A stretch of 64,000 bases of DNA from Mytilus californianus (taxonomy: Eukaryota): assembly GCF_021869535.1 (NCBI RefSeq), contig NW_026262690.1, forward strand, positions 53,258,001-53,322,000, written 5' to 3'. Positions 18-41,773 of the stretch are shown here, in pieces. Within the stretch, counting starts at the first letter, position 1, and every line of letters starts with the position of its first letter. A model generated the notes under the pieces. The model saw nothing but the letters and a program-made list of their open reading frames with translations, was not told the DNA's origin and did no database searches. Made by a program: the position numbers and the translations under genes.

Positions 18-6035
<6,018 letters not shown>

Positions 6036-12789: not shown

Positions 12790-12792
12790 ATG
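12790..12792 (+). CDS. Gene 2 candidate exon 1 (ATG only)
   Basis: gcaaaATG|gtaaga; best ATG|GTAAG junction found between gene 1 and exon 2. Confidence 0.6.
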
Positions 12793-15700
12793 GTAAGACT
12801 TTAGTTTTATAGATTAACAACTAATATTTATTACTGAACTACGGAGATCACTGTATATATAAGATGTAGCCCAACAAGTTTGTACATTATACAGATTTCA
12901 AATTAATTATTTACATTAGTTCTTCTGTACAAAATCAACTAACGAGATATTTTAATTAAAAGGTCGTAGAAAGTGAAATGTTGATAGAAAAACTAAATAA
13001 AGTGATGACCGAGTGAACGTTGCACCGACGTCAAAATATATTGAAAGGACATACACTCACGACTGACGTAATGAAATGACTACCGGAAGTATGACGTCAT
13101 AAATGTAAAAATCATGACGTCTTCTGATTTACCGTCGCAATATTGGGTAAGATCATACATTTTATATTCCTTATTCATGTTCATTATAATCCTTGCACCA
13201 GCTTATCTGAAACCAATGGCTGATATGCATGAATCATTTGCAGTGTGTCACTGACATGTGGAGCCAAACTCCCCGGCAGTTCCAGCTATACACCTTATTT
13301 GTCCGCCATTACTGGACATCACAAAAGTTCCCGTAAAATGTTGACGTCATAATAGAAAATATCTGACGCCACAATGGAAAAGTGATTGTCGTATGACGTC
13401 AAAAGTTCAAGCGGGACAGATTCTCGGGTCAACTGAGCGGGACAGATTTCCAAATAGCTAAAAGGTGTATTGGGGGGAGGGGGGGGGGGGGGGGGGGGGG
13501 TGTCCTTCATTTCTGTAATTTTTACGTCATTTTTCTCAATCTCTTTAAGGGAAAACAGTTCCGGAACGGAAACGATCACTGTACGGAGTTTGATGTGGAG
13601 CAGGCTCTGTTAACCCCTTCGGGAGCACCTGATATCACCACCGGTTTCTGGTGGGGTTCGTGTTGCTCAGTCTTCAGTTTTCTATGTTGTGGTTTGTAGA
13701 CTTTTGTTTATCTTTTCGTTGTTTTTCGCTTTTAGCCATTAAATTTTCTGTTCGTTGTCAACTTTAATATGAGTTTGACTATCCCTTTTGGTATCTTTCG
13801 CCTCTTTTTTGTTGTTGTTCTGAAATGTATTAAAGAGGCGAATGGTACCAAAGAGACATTCAATTTTCATAAGTCGATAAGAAATTGACAACGCCATGTC
13901 ATAAAAAAAACGACGGAAAGGGAAACAACAGTCAAAACAAAACACTTTATATTTTAAAAACATCTGACACGAAAATTCAAAAGACCAAAAACTGCCACAT
14001 ATGTTAATCCTTAATAACCGAACGTATGCTATAGGATATTGTCTGGGCTTTTAATACATACATTATGCATTGAATTGATTGCACAAAAAAACTAATTGAC
14101 GATAACAATCATCATCACTGTCTACATAATAATATACACTAGAACACACCCGCTATCTCGCGGTTCCGTGACTGAATTAAAGTAGGCTACCTACGCCTTA
14201 TTTGCAGTCAGGATTTTTATTATTCGTATTGTCATCTCATAAAGTCAGGTTGATTACAAGGTGTACAGTTTTCTCTGCTTTCAAAATCTTTCTGTTTAAA
14301 CCCATCCTGGTTTTCTTACTACAACCAGATGAGAGCGGACGTGAATATTTTTGCAAAGAGAATCCCTCAACGTCATTGAAATTGTTCTGTCAAATTGGTT
14401 TCATAGATAAATATTATCCTTACATCGTATATTTTATGTTTTGGACTACATTTTTTTGCTGAGGATAGTTTCTTCAGGAATTTTCAGGTTTGTTTGAGCA
14501 TGTGGTCAGATGGGATCCATTAGTAGTTTCCATGTGGGAAACTATCAGACCAATCTATTTGATGGCTGAGGGTTTTAGCTGTACCCCTAATGGATCGGTA
14601 GTTTCTGTCCGAGATCCTTTATCGTAGGATTTTCTGCTTTCCTCTACCAGGAATACAACTGGGCATTTAGCGGTAACGGTTTGGAATCCAAGTATGTCCT
14701 TACCGGTTTCCCGTTAGTTGTCATGGCATTTGTGCGGAATCCGGGGTGACATTTTCTCTTATTTTGTATATATTTTGCACTTTTATTTTGCACTATTTAT
14801 ATTTTGAAGATGACCGAATCAGGTGAGTGGGTGTGTTCGTATGTTGTATTGCATTGTATTTATTCATGTTTTGGGAAGGCTAACTTTCTGGAAGTAAGTC
14901 CCGTCACGGCCATGCTGGGAACTGGGTAGGCAAATGCTCACATTAAATCTGTGTCGATACAGTGTTCTAAATGTCCTCCTTTACACCATAACTCATGATG
15001 GTGCTCCTAATGAAAGGAGGCTTATACGTAGCATACATACCGGAAACTACATGTGACATATATTATTGATATCGGTATCGAATTCGACCCGGAACTTGTT
15101 TTAAATTATTGATAATATTAATTATGTGGAAAACAAAAGTGCCTGGAATGGTGTAATTTTTAATCAACACTATTCTCTATATTTGTTATATATACAGTTG
15201 AATTCTTTGATTCTTCGTTTTTATGTCATGTCGGCTAACAAACTGGACCTCGTTATTTGAGTAGTATAAATGTTATACTATCAAAGAAATCATGAAATTA
15301 AAAACAGAAGTTGTTTTTTAAGAATTTCTAGCAAATACCTTGAACACTTTGACCTTGACTTATTTTCAAAAACCGTCTGACAAGGCAATCAGTAAAGTGC
15401 AGCTCTTTTGAAATAAAAGAGAATTTATTTCTAGGTATTTAGTGGTTGTCGTTTGTTTCTCGTTTCTCGTTTTTTATGTAGATTAGACCGTTGGTTTTCA
15501 TGTTTGAATGGTTTTACACTAGTCATTTTGGGCCCTTTATAGCTTGCTGTTCGGTGTGAGCGAAGGCTCCGTGTTGAAGGCCGTATTTTGACCTATAATG
15601 GTTTACTTTTACAAAGTGTGACTTGGATGGATAGTTGTTTCATTGGCACTCATACCATATCTTCTTATATCTATTTATCCAACATATGTTTCTTGTTCAG

Positions 15701-18700
15701 TCTGTAAGTTTGAAAAAATGATAACAACTTTGCAATATACAAGCATGACAGTTGTGTGGTAGTTGTGTTTAAAATTAGAATGTGAAAATACACTAAGATT
15801 AGGGTTGATAATTATTATGTATTGCTAAGATTATTTCATTTACAACCCTAAAATCCACAATGCAGGTATTAGACATCAACAGTTCTATAACCTTATAGTA
15901 TGCTGAATATTTCCTATTCCAATGAAAAATGATGTGGTTCATACATTTTTGTATTATTCAAAATTATCAGTCAATTATGTGTTCTACAAGGATCACCAGT
16001 CTTCACCTTTCATCTGATACCTTAATTACTAAAATATATGCTACATAGTTTTAGATTTACACCTATGCGTAGGAATTATTTTGTTTTAAATATGTACTAC
16101 TTTCCAGTATGTTCTTCTTTCCCGGGCCCGATTAGGTGGTGTTACATCTTACAAAGTCTATCCAAATTTATATTTGCAAAGACTTCCGCTCAAGCCGGTG
16201 CTAGGGGCCGTCTTAAACTTGCAGGGAGGTTAGAGTTGTTTTTTGTTTTTTGTTTTTTGTTTTTATTTTGATCCGTCTTGAAGGCCTGACTGTGACTTTG
16301 AGATGAAGAACAGCAATAAAAGCGCTGTTCCTTTGCTTATTGTGTGTTTTTTTGCTGTGCATGTACTGATTTTGTGTCCTATATCCTTTGTTTTTTTCTA
16401 TTATATTATCGGTTTGTTGTAGATTTGAGCTTATATCGAAGGTAGTGACAATAACATGCATACTTTATAGAACAGTGTATTTTTTATATCTTTGTTTCAG
16501 AATGATCCAAAAGAACACTTGAAGTTAGGTATGTTCCCAATCCAGCTTGATATTAAACTTATCTATGAAACTATATAAAACATATATGTGCATTATACAT
16601 TAGTCCTAAGACAAACTTGAAAGTAACAATCTTTTGAACGGTAATTGCACTTTAAATACTACCTTTGAACAGTGTACTTGTCGTTTTGATTTAGAATATG
16701 TATTAATGCATAAAGATATGCATGTTTAAAATTGACTACATTTTACAGAATTGCCTAAATGCTCTCCAGCGTCGCACTAAGGTGCAGTAAGTCCCGGCTC
16801 CGGTAGCAAGATAGTTAATATTAACCAACATCTTCTGAAATATTCTTGACACCATATGTTTGATAGGAGTTATAATACATATGAAACTTTTTCGGATTCA
16901 TAGTTAATATGAAAGTTCTAAATAAATAAGTACTGTATACATCAATTTATTTCTACGAGTTCTGTCAGTGGTAGCTTGTTTGCACACAAAACAGTTCGAT
17001 TATCACTGAGGTCGTACGCTCAATTTTTGGGACTACGAATCATAGGAATTTCAGGATTTACTAAAATTTTTAAACGACTAGTTACCTTCATCTTCATATA
17101 CAATTTCGTATTCTTTCACTACATAACATTTTTCAAATTAAATCAATTTCCTCCAGTGGCAAATATTTCATACTTATCTAGTACAATTAGAACATGTGTT
17201 AAGGTCAAGCCTGCATTAACACTTCATTTTGACTTATTACATTAATAATCCATATTACAGAGTTTAAAGAAGCATTTTTACTGGTTGATAAAACTGATAC
17301 GGGACTTATACCGAAAACAGAACTTGGAAAATGTGTCCGAGCCTTAGGACTGAATCCTCCAGAAATAGAAATATCAGCAATTCAAGGAACGGTTGATCCA
17401 GAAGGTAAGCATACATGCACAGAAACAACATGGTTAAGAAATACTGGTTCAAAAGCCTGGTAAAAATATGCCTTGATTTTATCTTGACATTCTCCCGTTT
17501 TAATTACAATGTTGAGTGCATGTAACTAATCTTAATGCGTTTCTAATAGTATACATGCTTAACTTAACAGTATCTAATGTTTTTTTTTATAAACACATGG
17601 AGATTGTGTCCATGGGACACAAATGATGCCCCCTCTTGCATGTAACGTTATAAAGGGTTATAACTCCGGAACGGTAAAAGTGACGCCACCCAAATTCGAA
17701 CTTGATCTGTGTTTTGTGGTAATAAGCATTGTATATAAGTGTAATAACATTTGGTTCAGGCAAACTAAAGTTAGAGAACGGAAACTAATTTTGGGACATA
17801 CGTACGAACGGACGGACAAGGGTAACACTTAATGCCCCTCCGCCGCGGCGGGGGCAAAGTGAGTTAGATACAGATGTATCTCTGCATTCTAGGAAATCAA
17901 AGTTGTAAGTAAAGTTCACAGGTTAGGTTTTATGGTGTATTCCTTTTTCCTTATTAATCGTCCCGAACATGCATGAAATATTTGCCACCGAACTTTAACC
18001 AAACCTCAATCAATCAAGCAAGTAATCAATCTTTTTTATGAACAGTTTTTAGTGTTTTCCGACTCTTTTTTCTAAATTTAAATACTAAAATCGCATCAAT
18101 TTTTACAATTGAATTTTACCAGGTAATGAATCAATAGACTATGAGACGTTTCTTTCATATGTGGAGAACAAGGCTCAAGAAGTTCACCCAGACGATGAAC
18201 TGCGAGAAGCTTTACGTGTTTTTGATAGAGATGATAATGGATATATTAGTGCAGAAGAGTTAAAGCGAATGATGTTAACATCCGGTGAAAGTTTAACGGA
18301 AGAGGAAGCAGATGAGATGATGAAATTGGCGGACAAAGAAGGAAATGGACGAGTAAACTATGATGGTAACTGTAATACATTTACTCAAAACCATTACTTA
18401 TTATACAGGACATGATATCATTTCATTTACAGGAATAAAAAGCGGGCTACATATTTTAGTATGAAACCTGGTTGATTTGAGCAATATCCGCTTTAAATAT
18501 CCTTGCCTAAAATATAATGCAAAAGTTAACTCATCTGCTAAAATCACAATTTTTTATTCATAGATAAGTGAATAATTTAACATAGTTACATGAACTTGAA
18601 AAACCATGAACCTCGAAGAAATAAAACGGTAAAAAATAAAGATATGCTTGTTTGTTTCTTTTCAGTTCCAATCACCTTTACACTTCACACTTGATATATT

Positions 18701-18913
18701 TCATTTTACTTGTATATTTGATCCGCTGGCTTTTATTAAAAAACACATTAATATATGATCATACTCTTCGACTTATGAGTTTTGAATGTCCCCTTTGTAT
18801 CTTCCGCCTCATTTTATGAAGCAGATATCCATATCATTTTGTATTTTTTCTACGGTGTTAATCAAGGTTTTATTTCTATTTCAGACTTCGTTAATATGAT
18901 GCTATCCGTTTGA
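12790..18913 (+). CDS. Calmodulin-like protein, cluster gene 2 (148 aa, N-lobe degenerate); join(12790..12792,16501..16528,17261..17404,18123..18365,18885..18913)
   Basis: GT-AG introns and calmodulin exon sizes; 447 nt. Protein MNDPKEHLKLEFKEAFLLVDKTDTGLIPKTELGKCVRALGLNPPEIEISAIQGTVDPEGNESIDYETFLSYVENKAQEVHPDDELREALRVFDRDDNGYISAEELKRMMLTSGESLTEEEADEMMKLADKEGNGRVNYDDFVNMMLSV*. Exon 1 position is the best candidate, not proven. Confidence 0.9.
13025..13529. promoter_or_regulatory. Cluster of CRE (TGACGTCA) motifs with an adjacent ETS-like CCGGAAGT
   Basis: Perfect TGACGTCA at 13092, 13342, 13394; near-matches at about 13026, 13063, 13114, 13365, 13522. Function not shown. Confidence 0.4.
13472..13500 (+). 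repeat. Poly-G tract (28 of 29 nt)
   Basis: Direct reading. Confidence 0.95.
13590..13900. mobile_element. Penelope-like terminal-repeat remnant(s), partly inverted
   Basis: GGAGCACCTG...GGGGTTCGTGTTGCTC block; related fragments near 4390, 23800, 33700, 49000; GGTATCTTTCGCCTCT followed by its imperfect inverse near 13831-13870. Confidence 0.5.
14139..15270 (-). mobile_element. Non-autonomous Helitron copy 3 with about 700 bp unique filler
   Basis: Reverse complement of the copy 1/2 termini; hairpin plus CTAG|T at 14139; A/T insertion site. Confidence 0.8.
15432..15672 (-). repeat. Dispersed repeat family R1 (AAGAAGATGTGGTATGA...GCCAATGAG head)
   Basis: Same block at about 27863-28255(-), 29680-29950(-), 33481-33660(+), 39376-39570(+), 51475-52030(+). 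Confidence 0.8.
16501..16528 (+). CDS. Gene 2 exon 2 (NDPKEHLKL-E)
   Basis: tttgtttcag|AATGAT...TTAG|gtatgt, 28 nt (3n+1), joins in frame to EFKEAF. Confidence 0.82.
17261..17404 (+). CDS. Gene 2 exon 3
   Basis: attacag|AGTTT...GAAG|gtaagc, 144 nt; EFKEAFLLVDKTDTG...DPEG. Confidence 0.94.
17590..17845. mobile_element. Short Helentron/HINE-like element in gene 2 intron 3
   Basis: GGAC microsatellite plus terminal GC hairpin GCCCC-TCCGCCGCGGCG-GGGGC. Confidence 0.5.
18123..18365 (+). CDS. Gene 2 exon 4
   Basis: ttttaccag|GTAAT...GATG|gtaact, 243 nt; overlaps ORF 18161..18415. Confidence 0.95.
18885..18913 (+). CDS. Gene 2 exon 5 (DFVNMMLSV*)
   Basis: tctatttcag|ACTTCGTT...GTTTGA; AATAAA at 19071 and 19085. 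Confidence 0.9.
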
Positions 18914-19119
18914 TGACTACAGCACAGTTTTATGCCTTTTTACAAACATTTATGCTGCGAAGTGTTCAGTACTGCATGGACAGTAAATGGATATAGCATT
19001 TAAGATGAACATGAACTTCATGTTAGACATATATAAACTGAATGTAATATCCATGATCGTTAAACAGAACAATAAATCTTCTGCAATAAAACACCTTTTT
19101 TCGTAACAGCATGCATGAT

Positions 19120-19700
19120 TTATTCATTATAGCCGTCCGTTCGTCTGTTCGTCTGCCACAAGTTTGGATTCTGGATGATAATTAAAGTATCGCTTGACCA
19201 AATCTTTTGAAAATAATGTCATCGACCATTAAATATAGGTCATGTTTGGTTTTGGTGATTTTGGCATTTACCGATCTAGATTTTTTACCCTTATAGTTAC
19301 CTTTAACATTGTGTTCTCTTCCGCTTCCGGATATCGATGATAATTAAAATATTGCTAGACTAAATCATTCGAAACTTAAACACAATGTCATAGACCATAC
19401 AATACAGGTCTAGATCGATTTTTGTGGTTTTAAAGTTATGCCTTAGTAGTTACTTTTAAGATTGGCATTGTACCACTTATCAATTAATTTGAAATCTGAA
19501 CACAATGTCATATGGATCGTCAAATAAAGGCCATATTGCATGTTGATGGTCTGACATATATATCGATTAAGAGTAATGCCACTTAAAAAATTGACAATTT
19601 GGGTTGCCAATGATAATTAAAGTCCTTCTTGACCAAATCTTTAAACATTTGAACACAGTTTCGTGGATCACTCGATCACCAAATTCTAGTTTATCATATA
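19120..19700. mobile_element. Degenerate HINE-like element with internal repeats
   Basis: CCGTCCGTTCGTCTG microsatellite; recurrent GATAATTAAA...TTGACCAAATC units. Confidence 0.4.
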
Positions 19701-19894
19701 TATGCATACATTGGTTCAGTAATTTTGATAACAGTATAATTACCAGAAACTCGCTTCATATGACTTTGAATGGAATTAAGAGAGATCTTTACTAAGTTTG
19801 GCCTTAAAACTGGCTTAGTGATTCAAAATAACACACAACTTGGTGCCAATAGGAATGCCTACATCATACAATACTATAGTACTAAAAGACATGA

Positions 19895-20130
19895 TCCCGG
19901 GTGCGGGATTTTAATTTTAGTTTCTTGTGTACAATTTGGAGTTTAGTATGGCGTTCATTATCACTGAACTAGTATATATATTTGTTTAGGGGCCAGCTGA
20001 AGGACGCCTCCGGGTGCGGGAATTTCTCGCTGCATTGAAGACCTGTTGGTGACCTTCTCCTGTTGTCTGTTCTATGGTCGGGTTGTTGTCTCTTTGACAC
20101 ATTCCCCATTTCCATTCTCAATTTTATTTA
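19895..20130 (+). repeat. Dispersed repeat family R2
   Basis: GGGGCCAGCTGAAGGACGCCTCCGGGTGCGGGA...CCATTCTCAATTTTATT; near-identical second copy at about 23495-23642. Confidence 0.85.
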
Positions 20131-21478
20131 TGATTGGTTTCCATATCAGCACAACCAATTTATACTTATAGCATTCTGGACAATCATTGCGAGTTTTCTT
20201 CCAAACGATCTTATTAAACTTTGTGTTACTCATACCAGTTTGTTTTCCGTCTGGAATGCTGCTATTAAAAAGCCTCCCCTGAGCTGATTTTCACCGCCAG
20301 TTCTTCTATGTACCATTTGGTTTTTCCGCTGATCGACATTATACCTGTTTGGGTTGCTAACCTAATTTTGTCAATATAACGGAAATATAAACAACCGTCA
20401 TACAAAAGGAAGTTTTAGCTAGCAATAAAACCAGGTTTAACCCACCATTTTCTTCGGGAAATGCCTTACAACGTCAGGAATATGGCAATTTATTTTCACT
20501 TGTTCCTTTGATTTATAGCGTTTGATTTTGTCAGTTTTTATGGACTTCCCCTTTTTTTAATTTGTCTTAGAGTTCAGTGATTTTGTTATACTTTTTTTAT
20601 AAAGGGGAAGGATTGAGATATAAAAAAAATACCCTGCCATGTTAAATTGTCTGACGTAATTTAAAAACTTCGTCTGAGATTGTTTGCCTTTTTATTTTGT
20701 TACTTTTTTGTTTTCTTTAATACATCAGTTGTTGTTGTCAAATCTTTAGTAATCTATTAATCAAATTAAACGGTGCAAATAAACTCATCATATATTAATT
20801 ATACTGTACCAGATGGCTATTTCGACAATACATGTCTCTTCAGTGATGCTTGAGGTCAAAATATTTGAAAACCAAAACATATAGAAACGTTGAGGGGTTG
20901 ATATAATCGAATTGCCTAATCCGTGCACGGAATCAGAGCTATGGCCGACGGATATGCCTTCCCAGAGACCTATATATACACACATATATATATATATATG
21001 TATATATGTCTCTGGCCTTCCTTAATTTCTATATTTTCTTAAGTTTTACAACAGCTTATTCAGATAAAACAATATCCGTATTTTTATGCCAGCACCAAGA
21101 CTATATCCTGTTACAAACTTATTCGGGGCGATTAAGTTAGCACTCCAAAGTTAGGAAATAAAATCAAAACTGACCCACAAAATGTTTAATCATCTTCTAT
21201 TCCTGGCTTTCTAATACATTAAGCCAACTGTTTGTGTCATACATATGCATATGTATTTAATCAGTATCTTCCATAGATTTGATTTTCAACAGTTAAAATG
21301 GTGAAATATAATATATGTATCCAAGGCAACATTCCGCATTTATTTATCATAAAATATTGCAAAAAGGGGCACAAAATGTCATAAATTCCCCAAAATTTGG
21401 TTAAAACTAGAATTTCAATCACTTAAAGTGATAAATTTTCTGAAATTATTGACATTAATCTATCAAATGATTAAATAA

Positions 21479-22775
21479 CTAGAGGCTCTAAAGAGCCTGT
21501 GTCGCTCACTTTGGTCTATGTGCATATTAAACAATGGACACAGATGGATTCATGACAATATTGTGTTTTGGTGATGGTGATGTGTTTGTAGATCTTACTT
21601 TACTGAACATTCTTGCTCCTTACTATTATCTCTATCTATAATGAACTTGGCCCAGTAGTTACAGTGGAAAATATTTTGTAAAAATTTACAAAAATTTACA
21701 AAATTTATGAAAATTGTAAAAAATTGACTATAAAGGGCAATAACTCCTTAAGGGGTCAATTGACAATTTTGGTCATATTGACTTATTTGTAGATCTAACT
21801 TTGCTGTACATTATTGCTGTTTACAGTTTATCTCTATCTATAATAATATTCAAGATAATAACCAAAAGCTGCAAAATTTTCTTAAAATTACCAATTCAGG
21901 GGCAGCAACCCAACAACATGTTGCCTGATTGGTCTGAAAATTTCAGGGCAGATAGATCTTGACCTAATGAACAATTTTATACCATCAGATTTGCTCTAAA
22001 TGCTTTGGTTTTAGAGATATGAGCCAAAAACTGCATTTTACCCTATGTATTATTTTTTTGCCATGTCGGCCATCTTGGTTTGCGGGCAGGGTCATCGGAC
22101 ACATTTTTTAAACTAGATACCCTAATGATGATTGTGGACAATTTTGGTTAAATTTGTCTTAGTAGTTTCAGAGGAGAAGATTTTTGTAAAAGATTACAAA
22201 AATTTACGAAAAATGGTTAAAAATTGACTATAAAGGGCAATAACTCCTTAAGAGGTCAACTGACCATTTTGGTCAAGTTGACTTATTTGTAGATCATACT
22301 TTGCTGAACATTATTGCTGTTTACAGTTTATCTCTATCTATAATAATATTCAAGATAATAACCAAAAACGGCAAAATTTCCTTAAAATTACCAATTCAGG
22401 GGCAGCAACCCAACAACGGGTTGTCCGATTCATCTGAAAATTTCAGGGCAGATAGATCTTGACCTGATAAACAATTTTACCCCATGTCAGATTTGCTCTT
22501 AATGCTTTGGTTTCAGAGATATAAGCCAAAATCTACATTTTACCCCTATGTTCTATTTTTAGCCATGGCGGCCATCTTGGTTGGTTGGCGGGGTCATCGG
22601 ACACATTTTTTAAACTAGATACCCCAATGATGATTGTGGCCAAGTTTGGTCAAATTTGGCTCAGTAGTTTCAGAGGAGAAGATTTTTGTAAAAGTTTACG
22701 GACGACGGACGACGGACGACGGACGCAAAGTGATGAGAAAAGCTCACTTGACCTTTCAGGTCAGGTGAGCTAAAA
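21479..22775 (-). mobile_element. Helentron-associated non-autonomous element (HINE/DINE-1-like) with a 500-bp internal tandem duplication
   Basis: GCTCAC/GTGAGC sub-terminal inverted repeats, terminal hairpins AGGCTC-TAAA-GAGCCT and GACCT-TTC-AGGTC, (GGAC/GAC)n microsatellite, CTAG end; AAATTGACTATAAAGGGCAATAACTCC at 21721 and 22221. Confidence 0.85.
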
Positions 22776-23494
22776 ATTGGGCATCTTTATATATCTTTAT
22801 TTCTCAACAAACAAAATTACATTGGTATAGAGATACACACAATAAATATTACATTATGTATATGTTACGAAAGCAAGGCAAAGGCAAATATCACAAATTA
22901 CAGTATACAGATTAAACTAAATGGTACCAAGTACATAAGTTACACAGGAGAGCCTACATGCATATTAAATAGTCTTATAAATTTACACAATTCACAAAGA
23001 TTTTTGCTATTCATCAGTTTATTAAATTTTTATGAATTTGGTTCATTTGCATATTTTTTTCTCAATAACTGTTAACGGTCATCATTAAATACAGAACATG
23101 TAAAAAATATAATGAAATTCATCTCCGATGTCACCGGGGTAACAAAGTAAGCATTTCCTATTTTCTCTTGCAATATTTTGCCATCTACCACTCTCAATAG
23201 GAAATCTATGATTTCTTGTTCTCAACCTCATTTTTTCGTAAATTTAAGTCACAAAGTTCGTGCGACAACAAGGTGGAAAAACATTCCAATAATTTCTGTC
23301 AGAAAAAAAACCACAATACATACATTACACAATCTTGGTGTTCATATAAACCCATTTTGAAGGCCATGTTAATCATCTGCTATCCAAAAATTAATTTCAT
23401 TGCACACTAGAATTCCAATTTTTCAAAATGCGAAAATACACATCTAACTGTGGAGTGCTACCTAAGAGATTGGCATACGCTTATGCTCTTTTCT

Positions 23495-23642
23495 ATGTTT
23501 TAGGGGCCAGCTGAAGGACGCCTCCGGGTGCGGGAGTTTCTCGCTGCATTGAAGACCCATTGGTGGCCTTCGGCTGTTGTCTGCTCTATGGTCGGGTTGT
23601 TGTCTCTTTGACACATTCCCCATTTCCATTCTCAATTTTATT
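23495..23642 (+). repeat. Dispersed repeat family R2, copy 2
   Basis: Matches about 19985-20130. Confidence 0.85.
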
Positions 23643-24827
23643 GAAATACGTACGTTGTTTTTTAGATAACTATCCATATTTAAAAAAAGGAGAAAAGATA
23701 CAAAAAAGGAGCAATAAAAACTTTAAGTCAAAGAAAAACACACATTGCCCAAAGAAAAAATGTCAAAAGACAAAGAACTGTCTACAAAAAACTGCACAGA
23801 AAACTGACAATTGAGCAACACGAACGACATCTATTAATTCTTATATTTTGCTGAGCTATTTGCTATTATTTAGAGCTTGTTTTTCTCTCTACAATTATCA
23901 GTGCTGTTCCTGTTGCTCAATTTATTTTTTATGCTTTTAATTTGTGTATTTTGTCAATCATTATGCTTCTATGTGTGCTCATTTGTTTTTGCTTTTTATT
24001 ATGCTACATGCTTTTATGGTTTTTGTTTGTACCCGTATATACGCAGATGTTTTAAATTATACGCTCGTGTTGCTTATTGATATGCATATATTTCCCGATT
24101 TTAATCAAAATTTACTTACTTTACTTACTTACAGACCTTAGTTTTTTCCATTGGTGCATCTCCAAAATTTGATATTATGTTTCTGATTTAACGAATGATG
24201 GATATAAATATTTGTTAAACATATGCTTTAACCAGATCAAAATGCGTCCACGAATTTTCATCAAACGACAATATATTTTAGTGACATGTATATTAACTGT
24301 TATCGATTTCGGAAAATATATATTATTCAAACCTGTAATGTATTTTTAATCATTTGTATTGTTTATTGGTTTATCACAAATCAGAGTTGATATTATTGTG
24401 TTGTGCGATTATATTGATAAAAAATCAATATCAACATAATATGGTTATATAAGAATTTCGATACTTTCACCTGCATGTTGGAACAGGTAAGACAATGAAT
24501 AATATACTTGATCTTTACCTATACGGATTTGGTGGTTTTCATTTTCTAATCCACATTTAATCATATGTATGCCTATTTTAAAAGGTATTGTATTATATTA
24601 CAATGAAATTACTATTTTTTATTTTTAAATTGTATAATGTATTTAAGTATGTTAATTTTTGTAATCCTCTTTTCCTAACGTTGTCAAGAAAATATTACCC
24701 TTTAAGGTACCTCTATTAATTTGGAATCCGTTTGATGGTAATACTGGATATATTGAATCAACAGGTGAAAACCAGAGATTTATGTCCACTTCGCTGTTAG
24801 CCACCAACCAGTCAGAACGTCACCAAA

Positions 24828-28902
<4,075 letters not shown>

Positions 28903-28987: not shown

Positions 28988-28993
28988 AATAAA
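28988..28993 (+). terminator. Candidate poly(A) signal, gene 3
   Basis: AATAAA 85 nt after the stop codon. Confidence 0.45.
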
Positions 28994-30007: not shown

Positions 30008-30360
30008 CCCCTGTCTAGTCTCAAAAGTAAAATCTTAAATTTTCAAAAGTAAAAAGCCAAAAGATTGTTAGATATTCACCAGGAAAGCTCAAAACCAAAT
30101 ATGTGAAAGCCAAAGATTTAAGAGCTTTATGACCAAAAGATTGTTAGATAATTCTAACAATCTTTTGGTCATATAGCTCTTAGGTCTTTGGCTTTCACAT
30201 ATTTGGTTTTGAGCTTTCCTGATGAAGGTTCATATAATTTCGTGATTGTTTATGATAATTCTCTAATGGATATAAGTAATTCCCTATTGGAGGATTCAGA
30301 AGTAGCATTGGCTTTTTACTGTTGAAAATTTAAGATTTTACTTTTGAGACTAGACAGGGG
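30008..30360. mobile_element. MITE with 53-bp TIRs containing a 72-bp-arm fold-back
   Basis: TIRs 30008-30060 and 30308-30360 (1 mismatch); inner arms 30077-30148 and 30153-30224. Confidence 0.85.
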
Positions 30361-33300
30361 AAAACTACTATTCATGCATAAAATATAAAGAAATAAATTT
30401 GGAAAGTGTATGAAAAAAATTGCATGTTATACACTATCCACACTAGGGACTATATTTGTAGACAACGAAAATCAAAGGACGATAACTGTGTCCTCGGACC
30501 AACAGTCCACCAGCAATGGTATCGACTTAGTACTAGTATATAATAAATAACGCTTTATCAATTTCGTGCGTCCGAAGCACCTGTCTGGATTTACCTTCTT
30601 CAAGAACGCTCAAACCAAAGCATTTGAAGGCCCCGGATGTATAAGACATAAACCTGTAAAGAGCTATATGACCACAAGATTGCCAAAAAAAAAAAACCGT
30701 ACGGAAGCACTGACTATTGAAGTACAGAAACAGTATTAGATTAGAAAACGACGTGATTTCACAAGCATGAATAAACAAAACTGCAAACAAACAAACAGTT
30801 TTTATGCGGCAATAAAGTACATGTACATTTGTGTAAGCCTACAATTAATCAGACTCAAAGAACTTAATCTGCTTCTATGAAACCACGTCGTTCTACACTC
30901 TAATAGCGGTCTGTGAACTTGACAGAAGATTCGATACAGCAATAACATAAACAGTATAGGAAGACTTGACATGGCACAATGCCTTAAAAACAAATACAAA
31001 ACTGCAATGCCGAAAAAGAAAGGAACATTTTAGGATTTCTTCAAACACAAATAGCAAATTGATGCATACAACATTTACGTTGGTGGTTTGTACGCGTTTG
31101 TTTGCGCTTTGCAGTTGTTCCAATCCTTAAATCTTTGATACTGTCTTTTGCTTCAGTAATATTTCTTGTATATTTGACCACATTATTACATTTGTTAAAC
31201 AAGCCACTGCAGATAGAGCTCCACTTCTCTAAATATCTTAAACTGGAGCGATTTTTAAAAAAACAAGGCTGAAACGTCTTAACGTATTGTACAACACTGA
31301 CCGTTACTCGCGTATTAATGTACAACGATACAATATCGACTTTATACCAACGCTTTTCGAAAATCATCGAAATACATAAGAAATGTCACAAAGTTTAATT
31401 AGACTACTTATATATGACACATCATGAGTGCTTTATGAAGTAGAAATAAGATATTAGGTAGCAGCTTCTACAAAGAGACGTTATACACTGCTAATTGATT
31501 TTGTATTTGTCTGGTTTTTTTTACAGTTGTCTACCCTGATTTCAAGTTTCTAACACTGAGTGTTGGTTCAGTTTGTCTTTCAGATATATTTGTCTTTGAT
31601 CATATTTTTTTCCTTCTGTTAAATCCAGCGGCTACATATAGAGCTCTACGTTTGTACTTTTCGAGTTAAAGAAAAATATAACATATTTCATAATACCTAA
31701 AAAATTATAACGAAAAGAAAGAATATGTAAAAGAAAAAATTAATACCAAGGCAAAATATAAAAAAGTAAGCTATACGACAGCCAACTGACCTTATATATA
31801 CTAGAGTTATAGTTATTGCAAAATGGTATATGTGTGAGCCTTTAGTTTATGGACCAAAGTTGTACTAATTTCCTGTCTTTACGTTTAGAATGAGAAATAC
31901 ATGTGGGAAGAAGAGAAATCAAATATTAGAATGTTTTTGCTTTCACACATTTGAATTCTTTAATATCCACATCCGACTCAAAATCAGGGGCGGTAATAAT
32001 TTTATCAAGTTATCTGCGGTCCGTATAGGGTAAAAACAGAAAACTTGCTAAATTCAACCGAGCAGACCAAGACAACTTTTTTCTTTTAGACGATTTGGTG
32101 CTAAAAAATATATTTTCCAATCAAAGTGGGCGTGCGCCCTCTTTGCACCCTGAATCTGCCACTGTTAGAGCCCTACATTAGGTATATAGTTACTGTACTA
32201 AATTTGGAACGATGTTTTGGTAAACTCAGAATCTTGACATGCTTTGTAAGGACATGTAATTTGGTTACCAAGAGTGAAATCTAGAAGTTAGTAATTGTGG
32301 TTGAAATTTAAATCATTGTTCGAAATTTTCTTAGTGAGTGTTCTTTGAGTATAATTAGGTTACTAAAAGGTTTCCAAGTGAAAGCTCAACCTTATGCCCG
32401 TATCAAACGGTTTATATAATGTGATTTAAAGAGAAAAAATATATTGTTTGGGGCTTTGTCATTTTAGACATCAGCATCATTATCATGAAGGAATATAGGT
32501 GTTTTCGTAAAAACTATTAAGGAACTGAATGTTCACACGAGATTTATGAAGATAATGTTTGCCTAATAATATAACAAGTAGAAAAAAAGGAAATAGAAAT
32601 CAAAGGACATATGTAAATCTCAAGCAACAAGACATGTAATGGACGAACAAATAACGAAAGGCGTAAATAGACAACAAAACATCCAACTAATGTTTGTGCA
32701 ATAGTCATGATAATAGTTAAGTAACGATTGATAATGGTTTGCTTAATATCCAATGAACAATCATGTAGTAAAGATATTTTGTAAAATTTTACCACGAAAA
32801 CTGCTTAAACAAGGATATGCACAAGCGAACTGTATTCGAAAGATTAGGACTGTCATACTTAATCAATCTTATAGTCTCTGAGATGTGCCGGTTAACCGTC
32901 TCATAATATGTCTTGACCAAGGTTGTCATATAGCTCTGATCAATATGTATATCGACAAATGATGGATCATAATACATGTCTGGTTTTTGGTAGGTCGTAT
33001 TGATTTGTCTGTTATATTTCCATGTATGTGCCTTTTGCTAGACAACTGATTGTGATTAACTGGAGGATTCAGGTAGCCTGTATCGTTTAGCCGGTAATCT
33101 TTTAATCAGAACATAAGAATGCCTTTAGGAGCCATTACTTTAGTTACAATTTTCAGAAAAGACGTTGAAAATATGACTTTCCATAGAGTTTAATGGGATC
33201 TATTTGCCCCCGATCAACATTAAACCAGGATCGTTTGTATATCACCGACCTGTTAAGGTTCAAAACATGTCGCTTATATTTTGAGGAGACATTTTTTTAA

Positions 33301-34557
33301 ATTGGCCAATCAGACTGAAATATTGTTTCAGGAGTGCGTTTTCCGTCCGATTAGAATGAAATGAAGAAATTTTGTAAAGACCCTACGTATTTAAATTATG
33401 TTTGTCAAGTTTAATTAAACTTATGTAGTGAAAAAGAAATTAAAGAAAATAATATTTCTCTCAGGGTTTCGATATAAAAACAAGAAGATGTGGTATGATT
33501 GCCAATGAGACTCAGAGACCAAATGACAAAGAAGTTTACAACTATAGGCCACAGTACGGTCTTCAACAATGAGCAAAACCCATACCGCATAGTAAGCTAT
33601 AATAAAAGACCCCGAAATGACAAATATAAAAAAAATCAAATGAGAAAACTAACAGTCCACTCACATTCCACAGATCAGTACATAAAAATTCAAGAATACG
33701 CAACACGAGCCTCACTAAAAACCGGGTTAATCCCAGGTGCTCCACATGTAGCACTCAGTTGTTTTGTTGCTCGTGGTGGAAAGTACAAATTCGGTGACAA
33801 GCCTTATTCGGTGATTTAACAATCGAAGAAATGATGTCTGGACTGTGGTTACAGCAATTGGAACATATCCATGGTGACAAAGATATGTCACAACCGTCAA
33901 CCAACTCGTGATGCCGTCCGTAAAACTTTCTATACAGATAAACTTTTACATTTCAGCTTGCGTAATTGTATTTTTAATTGTACTTGGCTTGTATATTCAA
34001 GCAGCTTACAATTAGAGACTATATTGAATTATTTGTGCTGTAAATGTTTTTACGATGTTTATTTTATTTGACTATAGATTGGTATTGGGAAAACACAATT
34101 ATTCACTTAACAAAGCACAAAGATACCGGACAGTGGAATTAATTATTACATTAAAAACTCCAGTCATTTACCATTTAAAGACATAACCTTGATCTCTTAA
34201 AACATTAAAATATTTAAACAAAGGTAAAACGTCATTGTGCTTCTGTGATCTAGAATAATACAATTCATACTTAGCTTTAAATGCCATCACAGCTGAATAA
34301 AAAAAAATCAGTATATGAATGTATGAAATCGGATCTGTGAAGTATTGTTCCTATCTTAATCTTTTAATTATACCCAAAACAGCTAAATATTTTAATTTTA
34401 GCTTTATTTCAACACCGATTACGAATTGCTACGCACACCGCATTCAAGTAACATATTGTAACAGTTTTGAATTAGTCTATATATTTTTTTTCGACTGGAG
34501 ATGGCGCTCTGTTAGCACATCCGGGTTTAGAACGAAAGTAAACGTAACATCCTGAAA

Positions 34558-34560
34558 ATG
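34558..34560 (+). CDS. Gene 4 candidate exon 1 (ATG only)
   Basis: ctgaaaATG|gtaagc. Confidence 0.55.
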
Positions 34561-37500
34561 GTAAGCGCACTTTTCTAATTTACTGAATACTTTTTTTTCA
34601 GATTTAAGAACAATTCTCTTGATATGCGTGTTTTGACTTTGATAAATAGTTTTGTTTTCAATTTATACACGACTTTAACTCCATAAATATATTTATTAAG
34701 TGTATATAGTTTCAAGTGGTAGATTGATTTTTATTGTATTGTTATATACGATCTCTTTGAAATTCAATAAAACTCAATTGATCACACATTTTCCATTATT
34801 GTTAAATGTTCATATACAAAGTTTGTTAACAATGTTGTACAAAGTATAACGTAAGTTTTATATTTGATTGCGACTTTTTGTTGAGGATTAACCTACTAAT
34901 TGAATTCTATTTAATAAAATATTCAATGAATTTAATGTTTTGGCACTTCATTTTATTTGATATGTGACATTGATTTGTATTACTAATAAATACGTAGTCT
35001 TGTTAAATGTCATAAGCGTTATTGTATTAATAACTATGTATATAGTGTATACTGTTCGACTGAAAACATTAATCTGCCGTGGATAAATTCTAACACACAT
35101 CTCATTTATTTAGTAACGTACTTGTTCAGATGGATTTAGAATAGTATATATTATAAAAAATAATTTAAAACTGATAAGTTCTTGATTAAATCTGAAGTCT
35201 CAGTGTGCGTTAAGGGACATAAGCTGTCAAACCCATTACCTCCGATTTAACTCAAACTCCTTATTTTGATTTAAGATATACAGCAATAATCACCAGATTA
35301 CAAAAGTTCAATAGGAAACAAAAAACATTGCATGAAATCGTAATAAAGAATCAGCATTTCGTTCGTATTTAAGGACTAGACGCCGTCTAGTTAACCATCG
35401 AGATGACCTCCGAAGACTGCCGATGGTCAAGTGATCCAATATATATATAAATAGACAGACACACACGTACAATGGTAAGATGACGAGTGTTCTATGTCTG
35501 CTTGATTTCGTGTAAATGTAAATCATCATTTAACCTGTATGCGAATGATTTTGTTTTGGGGGTTGACTCTTTTGTTTCACTATTAATTAACGACAATTTA
35601 TTCTTTTTAATTACTGAACATGCTGAGCAAATGCTCAACCAATCCCCAAGTAAGGGTCAAATTAATGGTTGCATGCATACAGACCTAAAATGAGGTCGCA
35701 TTATTGTCTTTCAAATCAATAATATATCAACGATGGTTTGGTCTTATTTTTACAAAATTGAATTTAACTGGCTGCTAATAACGAATTAGTATTTCAATAT
35801 TCTGCGTGGAGAAAAAAACATACTGTAATTTGATGTCTAAATCGAAGTTAATGCTCCTTAAAGGTGGAACATAAACATATTTTTATATTCAAAACATTCG
35901 TCGGATTTTTTTGCAAACAATAACGACGGGATTACATTTGATAACGGTTTCTTTATTATCCGTTGATAAATTTAAAAACTTTTAAGAAAGTAAGGTTTCA
36001 ACTCCTTCAGGCAAAGTCGACATATGGATTTGGCTATGTTTATATCACTTTTGGCCCCAAAGTTCCTGAAAAGCGTTACTGGCGCAACAAATCTATAAAA
36101 TGTTATTTTCATTCACAGGTTATGTTCTTCATCTATTGCTTTTGTCTGAATTATATTTTCTTTGAATGTTTCAACAGAAAAAAAGACAAAGTATCCAGAA
36201 TGATTGTCATGCAAGCCACAGGTTTGGCCTAACAAACTGATTTAAAATAATTCAAGTTTTTTATATCAATGCCTACACTGGGTTTGGAATCACTACCATA
36301 ATGTTATATCATGGCCTGTCAATCTGGTGACTTCTTCTGCAGCAGCTAATGCATTTGACTTTCTATATTTTGTCATTCTTACCCTACCCTACTTTTACAA
36401 CCTTTGTTGCAATAATTCTATATGGTTTGTATAATCTGTTTTGTGTTATATTGGTAATTGGTGCACATTTATTGGCGAGGCTATTTTGTTTATACACTGT
36501 ATGTTTTAAATTTTTCTATTCTCAAGAATGTGGTTGATGGATCTCCGTGATCTACTCTGTATTGGTTCGGATTTAAACACGTGCTTTTGTAGCTACATTT
36601 AATGGCTGCTAACAATTAAATTAAACATTGATATGATCAGTACTTTTTCATTGTTTTCTGTTTGTACTTGAAAGTTTTTAACAATTCCTCTTCTGAAGAT
36701 GTCATATGCTGTATCAATTTCCTTGAATTTTAAGATAAATGCTGTAGATTGTTTGTCTGAAAGATTGCATAGTTAGAAGAGTACAAACGTTACTGCACTG
36801 GATAAAATTTGAAAGATATTTTATTTACTACATTGTATTAAATTTGACAAATGCTTTCTCAAATAAAATTTAAAAAAAACAGTTGTTAAAATTTCTAATT
36901 ATGGCTTATGCATCTATAATGTATTCCATATTGCATATTATGCATTTGTTCTATTGTAGACATCGACCTACGGTCTTACGCCTGTACAAGTAGAAGGTAA
37001 GTATGATGTTATAATTACACATAGACGAGCAGACTAATTGTATTGAAACAACGTGTTGACTTTAGAATTACTGCATTTCATTTATTCTATGCAAATGTTG
37101 ACAAGAATACTAGAAAGTAAACAGTGCAAACGTGAGAACGTATTGACACACTGAATAAATTTTATGAAGTTCAACGTACAATCTCTTGAACTGGGGTTGG
37201 TTGTTGTTTGTCAAAAGCGCATACGTTATATAATCCTTTTGTCTACTTATTCTTTTGGAGGAGGGATGGTCTACCGTATTTGGATGAAATATGATTCAAT
37301 CTAAGATGATATATCAATGCCACTACTTTTGTATGACTATAACTAAAACACCTCTCAGTGGCGGATTGAGTTTTCTCATTACAGGCAACAAGAGGGGCGT
37401 CGACAATTTCAGGAATGTTTGTTTTGTAGCAATGGCGGATCTAAAAAAAACCTGAAAAATAGCATCTTAAGGAATATGCACCTTCTCACGTATATGTTAT

Positions 37501-40500
37501 TTTTTTTTATATAATTTTAAAGAATGTTGTAAATATGCTTTCGATTTAAAGTTATAATTCGCAAGTTCCGTATAGTATTTTGTAAACAAGTAAATAGAGG
37601 TGTAATCCTAGGCCCCATTCTGTTTGTAAGTCGCGCAAAGTATTTCAAAATTAGATAGTCAGACCACACAGCCCCATTTGGAATGATTAATGATGTTATG
37701 AGAAAACAAATAAACCCACATATAATGACTCATTAAAAAGAGAAGATGACTTATTTTTAAATACATATTGTGGATTATATTTACCAGAACTTTTTTTTAT
37801 CAAACTTTTGAATTTTTTACCCAAACTTGTGTAATTATGTTGATTTTAATCATTTCATGAATTGAATAACCGTAAGGGATAAAACTGGGAAATTTAATTA
37901 TGTTCCCCGAGAAAAATGTCCGGCGGCATATTGTTTTACCCCTGTCCGTCCGTCTCACATAGGGTATGTTGTTTGTACGATTTCTCCTGTTTTCAATCTA
38001 CTAGTATTAATTTTATATTATTTAGAGAGTTAACACAAAGGTGTGCACTTTGTCAGGATTTTGATGTTGTTGAAACTTTCCTCAAATGACGTCAATTTTG
38101 GTATATTAGGCATACGGGGTACTGCATGGTTTGACCGGCTAACGTCGCTTACAGTGCTAAAGCCAAAACTTTTTTATTATGTAGAGTGTTTGTACATATA
38201 TCGGGAGTGTTTGTACATATAACGGTGTGCATTTTGTCAGGATTTTGATTTTCCTTAAATTTCAACAAATTTGAAATATTAAGCATACGGTACATGGTTT
38301 GTCCAGCTTACTCCTCTTATAGTTTTCAAACTAAAATATTTCTATCGTATAGGATGGTAGGTGTGAATATTAACAAGATTTAGAATGTTCATCAAATGTT
38401 TAGAAATGACAGAAGGTTATACTTGGACATTTTTAGTGAAATTATACATTGCTGATCATTTTGTTTGACGGGGGCATCAACTACGTTTTTTTAATACAAT
38501 CAAAGCAAATTGTACTTCAACATCACTGTTTAATAAATCCAATGTTTGTGGCACGACTTTTTTGCATGTAGTTTTGTCTAGTTTATCAAGTAGAACACAG
38601 AGGCAATTAGAATGCTGACATCAGGCTTATTTTGTAGTCTTACACGATTGCTAACCAAAGAATCGAACTTTTATAGAAGTATAGATATTATCCAAACAAA
38701 GTACTCGAGAGTCTTCTTTTAGCAGACAAGTTCTGCATATAAAAATCATTGTAACCCTAACATATAAATCTCTACAGCAAGCAGGAACGAGCACATTCAA
38801 ATAAAGAATTATTGAAAAATGAAAAAACAGCACAACTTCCGATCATCAAAATATTTTAGCAAACAATAAGATGATTGAATCAAACTACAACAAAGCATTT
38901 TCGTGGTCGGATTTGTCACTGTTTATTATGTTTTCCAAAATCTTTGCCGTTTTCAACAACAGTTGTGTATTTTCCATGAGTTTTACCTCTACACAAATAT
39001 TAAATTACTCTTTGGAAAATAGACAATATGAAATTTTAAAACCCAAGCATATACTTTTCGTCAAATAATCGTTTTAAGGCTATCGAAACTACCAGCTACC
39101 TCTACGCCCTTTATTAATTATCCTTTCAGTTGTTTTTGAATTCTAAAATAACTGTCTTTTACAGAGTTTCGACAGGCTTTTAGGTTATTCGATAAAGACG
39201 GCGACGGCACAGTGTCAACCAATGAACTTGGAGTAGTGATGAGGTCATTAGGTCAAAATCCAACCGACGAAGAGTTACATGCTATGATCAATGAAGTTGA
39301 TGAGGATGGTATGTATATTATACCTGGAATAAATGACATAAGGATCATTCAGTATCATTATAATCTATTGATATAAACATAAGGAGATGTGGTATGATTG
39401 CCAATGAGATAACTATTCATCAGAGACAAATTACGAAGGTGTGAACTATAAGACACGGTTTTGCCTTCAACATCAGAAAAACCCATATCATATAGTTAGC
39501 TATAAAAGACTCCGTTATGAAAAAATATGAAACAATTCTAAAGAGATAACCAACGGCCTTGTTTATGTCGATTTAGTATAAAACTGTGTTCATATGCATA
39601 TATATTATGTTTACTTATTTATTAATTAATATTTTCCTGTGAACATACGGGTCCATAACAAGGCTACTCCCGGGGTATATATAATTGAACTAATTTCCGA
39701 CAGAGGAGAACAATCCCCTCACTGTAAGGGGCATCCGTTTGACTGTGCAGGATGTATTAATATGCAGGCACGTCCGTTCAAAATAGGGACTTCAAACACG
39801 TTGACTTGTGTTTTAAATGTGTTCTACTGCGTTTTGCACGTTCAAAAACTCGTGCAACAACACTGATTGATCCTTAGTAGGCTATTGTAAGGCAAAATGT
39901 CTGCCCTATTACAAAAATAGTTACACTCTTTTGCCAGTGACAGTCAACTCTAAGGGCGTGTTGGGAATAGAAATATGGTCATCTTGGTGTCGTTTCGATC
40001 AGAAGGAAAACCCTTGCTTAAAATGCAGGTCTGTTTGGTTGTGCGTTACACGTCCGGTAAGAATAAGGATGTTAAATCTGATGGGTCGTATAAAGAGTTG
40101 CATCAGTGTCTGCACGTTAAAAAATCCAACTCTTTGAAGGGTCCGTAGGTGCCTCACAGAAGCTACCTATTGTATTATTGCTGATAGTTTCTCGTTCTGA
40201 ATATGCATACTACTGTACATTTCCTGAAAGGCAAAAATTAATCCAGTGGCAGTCCAAATTTTCTCTCCTGCCACACCGCTCAGCTCGCATATTATTACTT
40301 TGTTCTGGATATGCATAAAATATTTATACCATTGGACCTTAAGCAAGCAACAATCGATCGATTCATCAGGAAAACTTGTCACATTTGCCGCTCGACGTTA
40401 AAATTCTAGTTGACTATTAATTATACTATCCAAAACCAAACTTTACTGCTGGTTATGTAACATACTTTATATCGGTTTACAGTCATTGCAACACTAAATA

Positions 40501-41773
40501 TATAACGAAATTGAACTTAGCTTGGCTATTTGCGAGATATACATTACATTGCATTCAAACTGGTCACGATGGCGACTATAACACTTTTGCTGCGGATAAA
40601 TCCCATTATACCGTCAGGACACTTTGATTCATTAGATTTATTGGTAGAGCTAACCCTCATCACAGAGTCCTGATAGGAAACATAAGATCTGGAACATCGT
40701 ATTAAACGACAAAGATACTCACTTTATAAGCAGGTACTTGAAGTATTGTTAAATTCATTAAACAATTGAAAAGAAATTAAAAACCGCATTGAAGAAGTGC
40801 AGTGTTTTGATATGTCGTTCGCATTTATTTGGGAAATGTCGAGTCGAACTTCCTGAAGGGTAAACACTTTTCAATTACCTAGTTTTTTTTTAATATTTAT
40901 TATGTGAAACTGATTCTGTCACTTTAACCCTCATATTATCATAATTATTTACTCTTGAAATCAAAATTTTCAACTTTCAAAAAGCTCTATAAACATTTTT
41001 TACTTAAGCAAACACGTTCCTTTATCCCTATATATTGTATTTGTAATGAACTAAGTGAGAATCAATGTTTGGTTGAACTCCAAGTCCTGTTGACCTTTTC
41101 CCTTTGCTTTCTAAAACATGTGAGCGACGTGAAATATTTTCCAAACAACGAAAAATAATACCATACATTTTAGAGCTTCCAAACGATTTAAAATAATGCC
41201 TATAATTTAAATTTATCTAAATCAATTTGTCTTTACAGGAAATGGGGAAATAGACTTTGACGAATTTTTGTCGATGATTGCTAAAAAGATGGGGGATATT
41301 GATTCAGAGGACGATTTAATTCAAGCTTTTCGGATTTTTGACACAAATCGAACCGGGTACATTACATCACAGGAGTTCAGGGAAGTCATGATGAATCTTG
41401 GAGAACGGCTGTCATATGATGAGGTCACAGAAATGATAATAGCAGCAGACAAACATTCCACGGGAAAAATCAATTATGCAGGTACAAACAGTGGGAAAAC
41501 ATTATCATTTTTCGGATAATATTTGATAATTAAAAATCAATTGTACGATTTCAGTTTCAGTAACCTTGCATCTGAAGGTAATGAGTTATACATAAGGTAT
41601 GGGGTTAATCGTGAATGCAAGAGTCAGAAGAATATTAAACGTTGCGATTAAAATATTTCTGAAACAAAATGTACATTAAAATAAAAAAAAAATAGAATGA
41701 CAAACAGTGCATACGCTACTAATTTACCATTTGTTTCTTCTTTTCAGAGTTTTGCGCATTGTTAACAAAGTAA
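34558..41773 (+). CDS. Calmodulin-like protein, cluster gene 4 (150 aa, C-lobe degenerate); join(34558..34560,36960..36996,39165..39308,41239..41481,41748..41773)
   Basis: 453 nt spliced. Protein [151 protein letters not shown] second ATG|GTAAG candidate lies at 35472-35474. Confidence 0.92.
36960..36996 (+). CDS. Gene 4 exon 2 ([13 protein letters not shown])
   Basis: ctattgtag|ACATCG...GAAG|gtaagt, 37 nt (3n+1); LTxxQV resembles LTEEQI. Confidence 0.9.
37900..38490. mobile_element. HINE-like element in gene 4 intron 2
   Basis: CCCCTGTCCGTCCGTC microsatellite end, internal repeats GTGCACTTTGTCAGGATTTTGAT, terminal GGGGGCAT. Confidence 0.45.
39165..39308 (+). CDS. Gene 4 exon 3
   Basis: ttttacag|AGTTT...GATG|gtatgt, 144 nt; [13 protein letters not shown]. 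Confidence 0.96.
41239..41481 (+). CDS. Gene 4 exon 4
   Basis: ctttacag|GAAAT...GCAG|gtacaa, 243 nt; overlaps ORF 41268..41519. Confidence 0.96.
41748..41773 (+). CDS. Gene 4 exon 5 (EFCALLTK*)
   Basis: ttcttttcag|AGTTTTGC...AAGTAA. Confidence 0.92.

Follow-up and report, generated by a model that had tools for sequence, protein, structure and literature searches.

A stretch of 64,000 nucleotides from the mussel Mytilus californianus (the window; NCBI RefSeq assembly GCF_021869535.1, contig NW_026262690.1, positions 53,258,001 to 53,322,000, read on the forward strand) holds four calmodulin-family genes, all on the + strand, as found by scanning the six reading frames with an EF-loop pattern. 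Two of them, genes 2 and 4, encode calmodulin-like proteins that have diverged mainly in opposite lobes, and the question raised by the locus is whether this reflects a division of labor between two daughters of a single gene. A preliminary description of the segment from the ATG of gene 2 (12790) to the stop codon of gene 4 (41773) took the two for mirror images, gene 2 degenerate in its N-lobe and gene 4 in its C-lobe, and proposed complementary subfunctionalization into a C-lobe-only and an N-lobe-only Ca2+ sensor with about two sites each. The explanation that we favor, with modest confidence, is that genes 2 and 4 both belong to a very large mussel family that derives from calmodulin and has expanded in tandem, that both are old and maintained separately, and that they became specialized independently.

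Both genes are already annotated: the spliced model of gene 2 is identical to RefSeq XP_052105396.1 ("calmodulin-like", Mytilus californianus, 148 amino acids) and that of gene 4 to XP_052105389.1 ("neo-calmodulin-like", Mytilus californianus, 150 amino acids). Every splice site in the gene models is GT..AG, and the reading frames of both genes are intact. Their products are calmodulin-derived EF-hand proteins, with four EF-hand units, calmodulin as the closest relative and a shared gene structure, the exon plan of 144, 243 and 26 nt being common to genes 1, 2, 3 and 4. Like calmodulin, they are 148-150 residues long and consist of four helix-loop-helix units, each with a short loop strand in the AlphaFold models of both proteins, which were built from small alignments (mean predicted local distance difference test score, pLDDT, 78.9 for gene 2 and 70.3 for gene 4). 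Homology searches were run exon by exon, the full-length steps using database proteins equal to the models or orthologs of them; the best sequence matches in the PDB are all calmodulin (E about 1e-43 for the gene 2 ortholog and about 1e-53 for that of gene 4).

Neither protein is calmodulin proper, with its four canonical loops, nine methionines and Lys115. Identity to the calmodulin-type gene 3 over residues 11-148 is 50% for gene 2 and 60% for gene 4. Five of the nine methionines are gone in gene 2 and three in gene 4, and by the PROSITE pattern PS00018 three of the four loops fail in gene 2 and one of four in gene 4. The N-terminal exons also differ, a search of genes 2 and 4 for the 31-nt calmodulin-like exon 2 pattern giving no match.

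Calcium-binding loops and methionine pockets

All eight loops quoted in the preliminary description read as written once the exons are spliced, and every substitution that it listed is correct; it is the grading of some of them that has to be revised. The first two loops of gene 2 are indeed broken, EF1 (DKTDTGLIPKTE) failing PS00018 at Thr3 and Pro9, and EF2 at Glu3, Glu6 and Thr12. EF3 (DRDDNGYISAEE) passes, as had been said, and is the single fully canonical loop of the gene. EF4 (DKEGNGRVNYDD), formerly called near-intact, fails at Glu3 and has Asp at position 12. Position 3 is Asn or Asp in more than 97% of classical EF sites, and in a model EF loop the loss of Ca2+ binding with Glu at this position was likely catastrophic, and Thr reduced the affinity (PMC2233790). 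Judged in this way, gene 2 probably has one fully competent Ca2+ site, not two.

The Pfam profiles divide gene 2 along the same line. Its exon 3 has no match to EF-hand_1, a profile on which the calmodulin exon reaches 43 bits and the gene 4 exon 41 bits, and it scores 20.7 bits with EF-hand_6, under the cut-off of 25; its exon 4 scores 51.5 bits with EF-hand_1 in two stretches, and a distant ortholog of gene 2 also shows two EF-hand_1 stretches. The methionines follow suit: M36V, M51I, M71Y and M72V, together with M76A, remove all five on the N-terminal side, and M109, M124, M144 and M145 are retained, the nine positions reading VIYVAMMMM. At residue 115 gene 2 has S and gene 4 has R, confirming that Lys115 is absent from both.

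We propose that the N-lobe of gene 2 still has the fold of an EF-hand pair, with non-canonical loops and without its methionine pocket, and that it would no longer serve as a Ca2+ switch; we infer for it the role of a constant structural or tethering half. The AlphaFold model gives this lobe a pLDDT of 84-86, as confident as the C-lobe. Ca2+ sensing would be left to the C-lobe, mainly to EF3, with EF4 presumably weakened by Glu3 and Asp12, and the earlier idea of gene 2 as a sensor relying on its C-lobe is in this respect plausible.

Gene 4 does not reverse this pattern. EF1 and EF2 pass PS00018, in keeping with their description as intact, and so does EF3, at every position; EF4 fails at one position, His3. 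Exon 3 scores 40.9 bits and exon 4 56.9 bits with EF-hand_1, EF3 being the best stretch of exon 4, and four EF-hand_1 stretches are recognized in the gene 4 protein of M. trossulus. EF4 begins DKNSSG or DKNSTG, with a canonical Asn3, in three other Mytilus species and in a distant mussel, the His3 being specific to M. californianus. There the His codon shows no letter differences in runs X16 and X13 or in the DNA run X4, and a Logan transcript allele of gene 4 likewise carries DKHSTG. The claim that EF3 and EF4 are both degraded fails for EF3 and holds for EF4 at a single position and in a single species. Three methionines are replaced (M72I and, as first reported, M144L and M145L), M109 and M124 are kept, and the nine positions read MMMIMMMLL.

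As far as its loops can tell, then, the C-lobe of gene 4 is diverged, not broken, and has probably been retuned with Ca2+ binding still retained. With one canonical site in this lobe in M. californianus and two in its sister species, the label of N-lobe-only sensor is unsupported. The N-lobe would be calmodulin-like with two canonical sites, and the C-lobe, evolving faster with loops that look EF-hand-competent, may have changed in affinity and target preference without being dead. Of the mirror image, the half concerning the N-lobe loops of gene 2 stands, and the other half does not, the C-lobe of gene 4 keeping a canonical EF3 along with M109 and M124; on this sequence evidence the losses do not look reciprocal, EF4 being canonical in the sister species as well.

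Conservation, selection and expression

Genes 2 and 4 have orthologs in M. edulis, M. galloprovincialis and M. trossulus, with proteins 93-95% identical, and in two much more distant mussels, at about 80-90% identity and with saturated synonymous divergence (dS). Spliced transcripts of both orthologs were found, on contigs about 1 kb long, in a single set of runs from one distant mussel, and a gene 2 ortholog transcript was found in a further mussel too. A word search with the distant gene 2 ortholog returned no orthologs beyond mussels, identity dropping from 82% to the 55% of generic calmodulins; as the index needs shared 5-mers, this result does not speak for their absence. The odd N-lobe loops of gene 2 are identical at every failing position in all four mussel lineages (DKTDTG[LI]IPK[TS]E and DPEGNE[ST]IDYET), and Glu6 and Thr12 of EF2 are also kept in two further partial sequences. 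A lobe conserved in this way, though its loops are non-canonical and its methionines lost, fits a Ca-insensitive structural or tethering lobe, and on the sequence comparison it represents conserved divergence, not decay.

The ratio of non-synonymous to synonymous change (dN/dS), calculated per lobe by the method of Nei and Gojobori, is 0.145, 0.064 and 0.076 for the N-lobe of gene 2 and 0, 0.025 and 0.051 for its C-lobe. For gene 4 it is 0.06 and 0.011 in the N-lobe, and in the C-lobe 0.18 against M. trossulus and low, if poorly defined, against the distant mussel. Over residues 11-148 both genes lie at 0.03-0.11. Non-synonymous change is more frequent in the diverged lobe than in the other one in each gene (p 0.036 and 0.0018), and neutrality is rejected within Mytilus for each of the lobes called degenerate (p 0.0007 and 0.0025). 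Both genes are real and intact, and both of their lobes are under purifying selection.

These figures bear directly on the possibility that the diverged lobes result from redundant tandem duplicates decaying neutrally towards pseudogenes, which the preliminary description had itself proposed to recognize by a dN/dS near 1. Redundancy is likely in so large a tandem array, and one lobe is evolving faster in each gene; against this, the faster lobes are constrained at 0.06-0.18, frames and splice sites are intact, spliced transcripts are seen, and identity is high both across the four Mytilus species and against the two distant mussels. The chance that neutral decay explains the pattern is negligible, conservation, dN/dS and transcripts together ruling it out.

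In M. californianus itself, transcripts of gene 4 were recovered directly. Run X16 yielded a contig of 1055 nt (depth 42.7) in which exons 2, 3, 4 and 5 are linked exactly at the boundaries of the model, and run X13 one of 918 nt that links exons 4 and 5; the two exonic differences seen (39277 and 41360) both fall at third codon positions. A sample of about 6% of the raw RNA run X21 contained no reads from gene 4 exons and is uninformative on level or strand. Evidence for gene 2 comes from ten probable RNA runs of several studies, in which 0.21-0.29 of the words sampled from 17100-19000 are present. This matches the exonic share of 0.26, and expression is inferred from the agreement.

Strong constraint on lobes without canonical ligands could also mean that one or both proteins are not Ca2+ sensors. 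Myosin light chains are constitutive subunits on IQ-type motifs, and genes 2 and 4 might encode subunits of this kind, on myosins or channels, with their loop divergence tuning binding in the apo state. Gene 2, with a single canonical loop and a conserved non-canonical lobe, would suit such a role, both lobes being strongly constrained in spite of the missing ligands, and calmodulin-like proteins with few working EF-hands are known as IQ-binding partners (bioRxiv 10.1101/2023.03.09.531943). We consider this unlikely, however: EF3 of gene 2 and EF1, EF2 and EF3 of gene 4 are canonical and strictly conserved, which suggests that Ca2+ binding is still selected.

Place in the mussel calmodulin family

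Searching the 1.65-Gb genome with exon 4 yields at least 46-48 calmodulin-type copies, most of them on the same chromosome, and at least 15 such genes lie in the roughly 310 kb around the window (C110:53.03-53.34 Mb). Exon 3 and exon 4 peptides were taken from 35 loci, covering 32 of the 45 places at which the family occurs outside the window. Loops could be read in 32 other paralogs: 19 of these pass PS00018 everywhere, and in 13 one or more loops fail, with patterns that include failure in the N-lobe alone (e.g. at C110:47.62 Mb), in the C-lobe alone, and mixed failure. Identity to canonical calmodulin in the N-lobe minus that in the C-lobe ranges from -0.25 to +0.30 among 39 rows, and gene 4 (+0.27) and gene 2 (-0.11) stand near opposite ends of this range. 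The opposite-lobe tendency is real but lies on a continuum, and in a family of at least 46 members with varied loops it is unremarkable to find an N-diverged and a C-diverged gene near each other.

One paralog, on the minus strand at C110:47.60 Mb (L026:1521-2912), has in its EF1 (DTEGTGKLPQDD) the unusual 'TG.[LI]P' motif with Pro9 that is found in EF1 of gene 2, and its EF2 and EF4 fail the pattern too. It is not grouped with gene 2 in the tree, so that the shared motif may be due to convergence.

Genes 2 and 4 are themselves only 38% identical (37-38% in the exon-4 search) and each stands about 32nd to 37th in the list of paralogs of the other, some 30 members being closer to each. In the maximum-likelihood tree each ortholog group has 100/100 support and a long stem (1.0 and 0.5 changes per site), and the two groups are placed with different partners on a weak backbone.

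This is the evidence on which the idea of a daughter pair has to be judged, that is, of genes 2 and 4 as products of one calmodulin-like ancestor, turned into C-lobe-only and N-lobe-only sensors with the other lobe as a Ca-independent tether. Several observations are in its favor: the near-extreme positions of the two genes in the range of lobe asymmetry; the faster dN of the more diverged lobe in both genes, under purifying selection all the same; and the order calmodulin, calmodulin-like, calmodulin, calmodulin-like, which could have arisen by duplication of a two-gene unit and is preserved in M. edulis (calmodulin, gene 2, calmodulin) and M. trossulus (gene 3, gene 4). A single clade is also not rejected by the approximately unbiased (AU) test. 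Opposed to these are the low identity, ranking and tree partners just described and the loops themselves, EF3 of gene 4 being canonical by both PROSITE and Pfam, its EF4 canonical elsewhere with His3 as one lineage-specific change, and M109 and M124 being retained, with Leu in place of M144 and M145; EF4 of gene 2, in turn, fails the pattern, so that two sites in that protein are doubtful. The daughter-pair model is on this evidence decidedly improbable, and complementary subfunctionalization unlikely; sisterhood of the two genes as such is neither supported nor excluded by the tree. Independent specialization within the family, where loop states vary widely, would account for the opposite-lobe pattern as something other than a complementary split of one ancestral function.

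Several points nevertheless weigh against independent specialization as we have described it. Forcing genes 2 and 4 into one clade costs 3.55 log-likelihood units, with an AU p of 0.33, and is not rejected. The Ca2+ stoichiometries of both proteins derive from sequence criteria, and PROSITE and hidden Markov model criteria can misjudge: Thr at positions 3 and 5 may donate an oxygen, and His3 may be tolerated or disabling. Values of dS against the distant mussels run from 1.8 to more than 4 and are saturated, and the dN/dS values from those comparisons are rough. Expression of gene 2 in M. californianus is judged from word shares, not from mapped reads. Finally, the strict conservation of the odd N-lobe loops of gene 2 could signal that they retain cation binding. 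There is a slim chance, as far as the sequences suggest, that these loops form a selected new site, with another cation preference or a fixed pseudo-EF conformation, and that genes 2 and 4 are an old sister pair sharing targets through complementary lobes.

Gene structure and surroundings

The coordinates of the four genes and of other features of the window, which is 29-36% G+C, are collected in Table 1. The alternative first exon of gene 2 corresponds to the annotated first exon of isoform X1 in M. edulis, M. galloprovincialis and M. trossulus; the 148-residue form is the sole gene 2 form listed for M. californianus among the cluster members, and the exon is a candidate there.

Table 1. Calmodulin-family genes and other features of the window
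Feature	Position	Strand	Details
Gene 1, calmodulin-type	18..6035	+	exons 18-20, 995-1025, 3378-3521, 4846-5088, 6007-6035
152 N	9236-9387		between genes 1 and 2; gap in the assembly, or masked sequence
Gene 2 exon 1	12790..12792	+	ATG only, then GTAAG; homologous to M. edulis start (locus L002, 10001)
Gene 2 alternative first exon	13114..13146	+	11 codons, MTSSDLPSQYW, then GTAAG; open frame and donor intact
Gene 2 exon 2	16501..16528	+	NDPKEHLKL + 1 nt; ortholog proteins as guides
Gene 2 exon 3	17261..17404	+	144 nt; EF1 17287-17322; EF2 start 17395-17404
Gene 2 exon 4	18123..18365	+	243 nt; rest of EF2 18123-18148; EF3 18224-18259; EF4 18332-18365
Gene 2 exon 5 with stop	18885..18913	+	last residue of EF4, then FVNMMLSV
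Gene 3, calmodulin-type	26498..28902	+	exons 26498-26528, 27613-27756, 28367-28609, 28874-28902; ATG-only exon 1 not located
Gene 4 exon 1	34558..34560	+	ATG only; 30 nt ending in ATG are matched by the loose end of X16 record 9, a transcript contig
High-copy stretch	35900-36099
Gene 4 exon 2	36960..36996	+	12 residues + 1 nt; ortholog proteins; joint 36994>39163 GT..AG in X16
High-copy stretch	37900-38099
Gene 4 exon 3	39165..39308	+	144 nt; EF1 39191-39226, EF2 start; joint 39307>41238 in X16
Dispersed repeat	39371-39419		in gene 4 intron 3
Gene 4 exon 4	41239..41481	+	243 nt; rest of EF2; EF3 41340-41375; EF4 41448-41481; His codon CAT 41454-41456
Gene 4 exon 5 with stop	41748..41773	+	EF4 position 12 Glu, then FCALLTK; joint 41478>41745 GT..AG in X13 and X16

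Genes 1 and 3 have all four loops and all nine methionines intact. They differ in several C-lobe and tail residues from a canonical-looking calmodulin copy at C110:43.5 Mb, with tails such as EFCKMMTNK and EFVRMMTSK, and neither is textbook calmodulin. The saturated dS between the two marks them as old paralogs of the calmodulin type and not as recent duplicates. Over the M. edulis ortholog of gene 1 (L002:1-2800) a gene call gives a product of 322 residues, which continues past the edge of the locus and is about twice as long as calmodulin; the call may represent a calmodulin model that is fused or extended. The nearest calmodulin-type neighbors lie 5 kb before the start of the window (53252879) and 17 kb after its end (53339393), and further clusters are found on the same chromosome at 6.27-6.80 Mb and 47.5-48.6 Mb.

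The third intron of gene 4 contains about 45 nt with a summed depth of about 900,000 in a DNA run, against about 60 around it. The segment is also deep in RNA runs, its depth being enormous in every run, and it is joined to many different flanks; it is a dispersed repeat of very high abundance. Two more high-copy stretches lie on either side of gene 4 exon 2.

Relation to known EF-hand proteins

Loss of EF-hand function in one lobe is already well known from centrins, troponin C, light chains and plant calmodulin-like proteins (CMLs). Plant CMLs differ among themselves in how many of their EF-hands work. Plants also have large, often tandem, expansions of calmodulin relatives that are specific to their lineages (PMC5983762). 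The mussel family is likewise large, with varied loops, but it is an independent bivalve expansion in which the intron-exon plan of calmodulin has been kept. The troponin C of the Akazara scallop is a natural C-lobe-only sensor, Ca2+ binding having been reported at site IV only. Site IV is also the site that has been studied in molluscan troponin C (PMC6414500). The Akazara protein resembles the role proposed here for gene 2; it belongs to another subfamily and to the muscle thin filament, and the canonical loop of gene 2 is EF3, not EF4.

Centrins, which are calmodulin-sized and two-lobed, offer a parallel in lobe use: most have at least one non-functional EF-hand, and some sense Ca2+ by the N-lobe only and others by the C-lobe only, the other lobe often binding targets independently of Ca2+ (PMC8622359). 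The mussel genes differ from them in their calmodulin origin, with calmodulin as their best match, and in having no centrin N-terminal extension. Within bivalves, the pearl oyster has a calmodulin-like protein (CaLP) that is distinct from calmodulin and linked to shell formation (as cited in PMC9063065).

With both genes annotated beforehand and their pairing unsupported, the main use of these results is in annotation of the family. Should biochemistry agree, gene 2 would be a conserved animal descendant of calmodulin with a Ca-insensitive N-lobe, and the mussel array would provide a natural series of EF-hand on/off variants in which the specialization of lobes can be followed.

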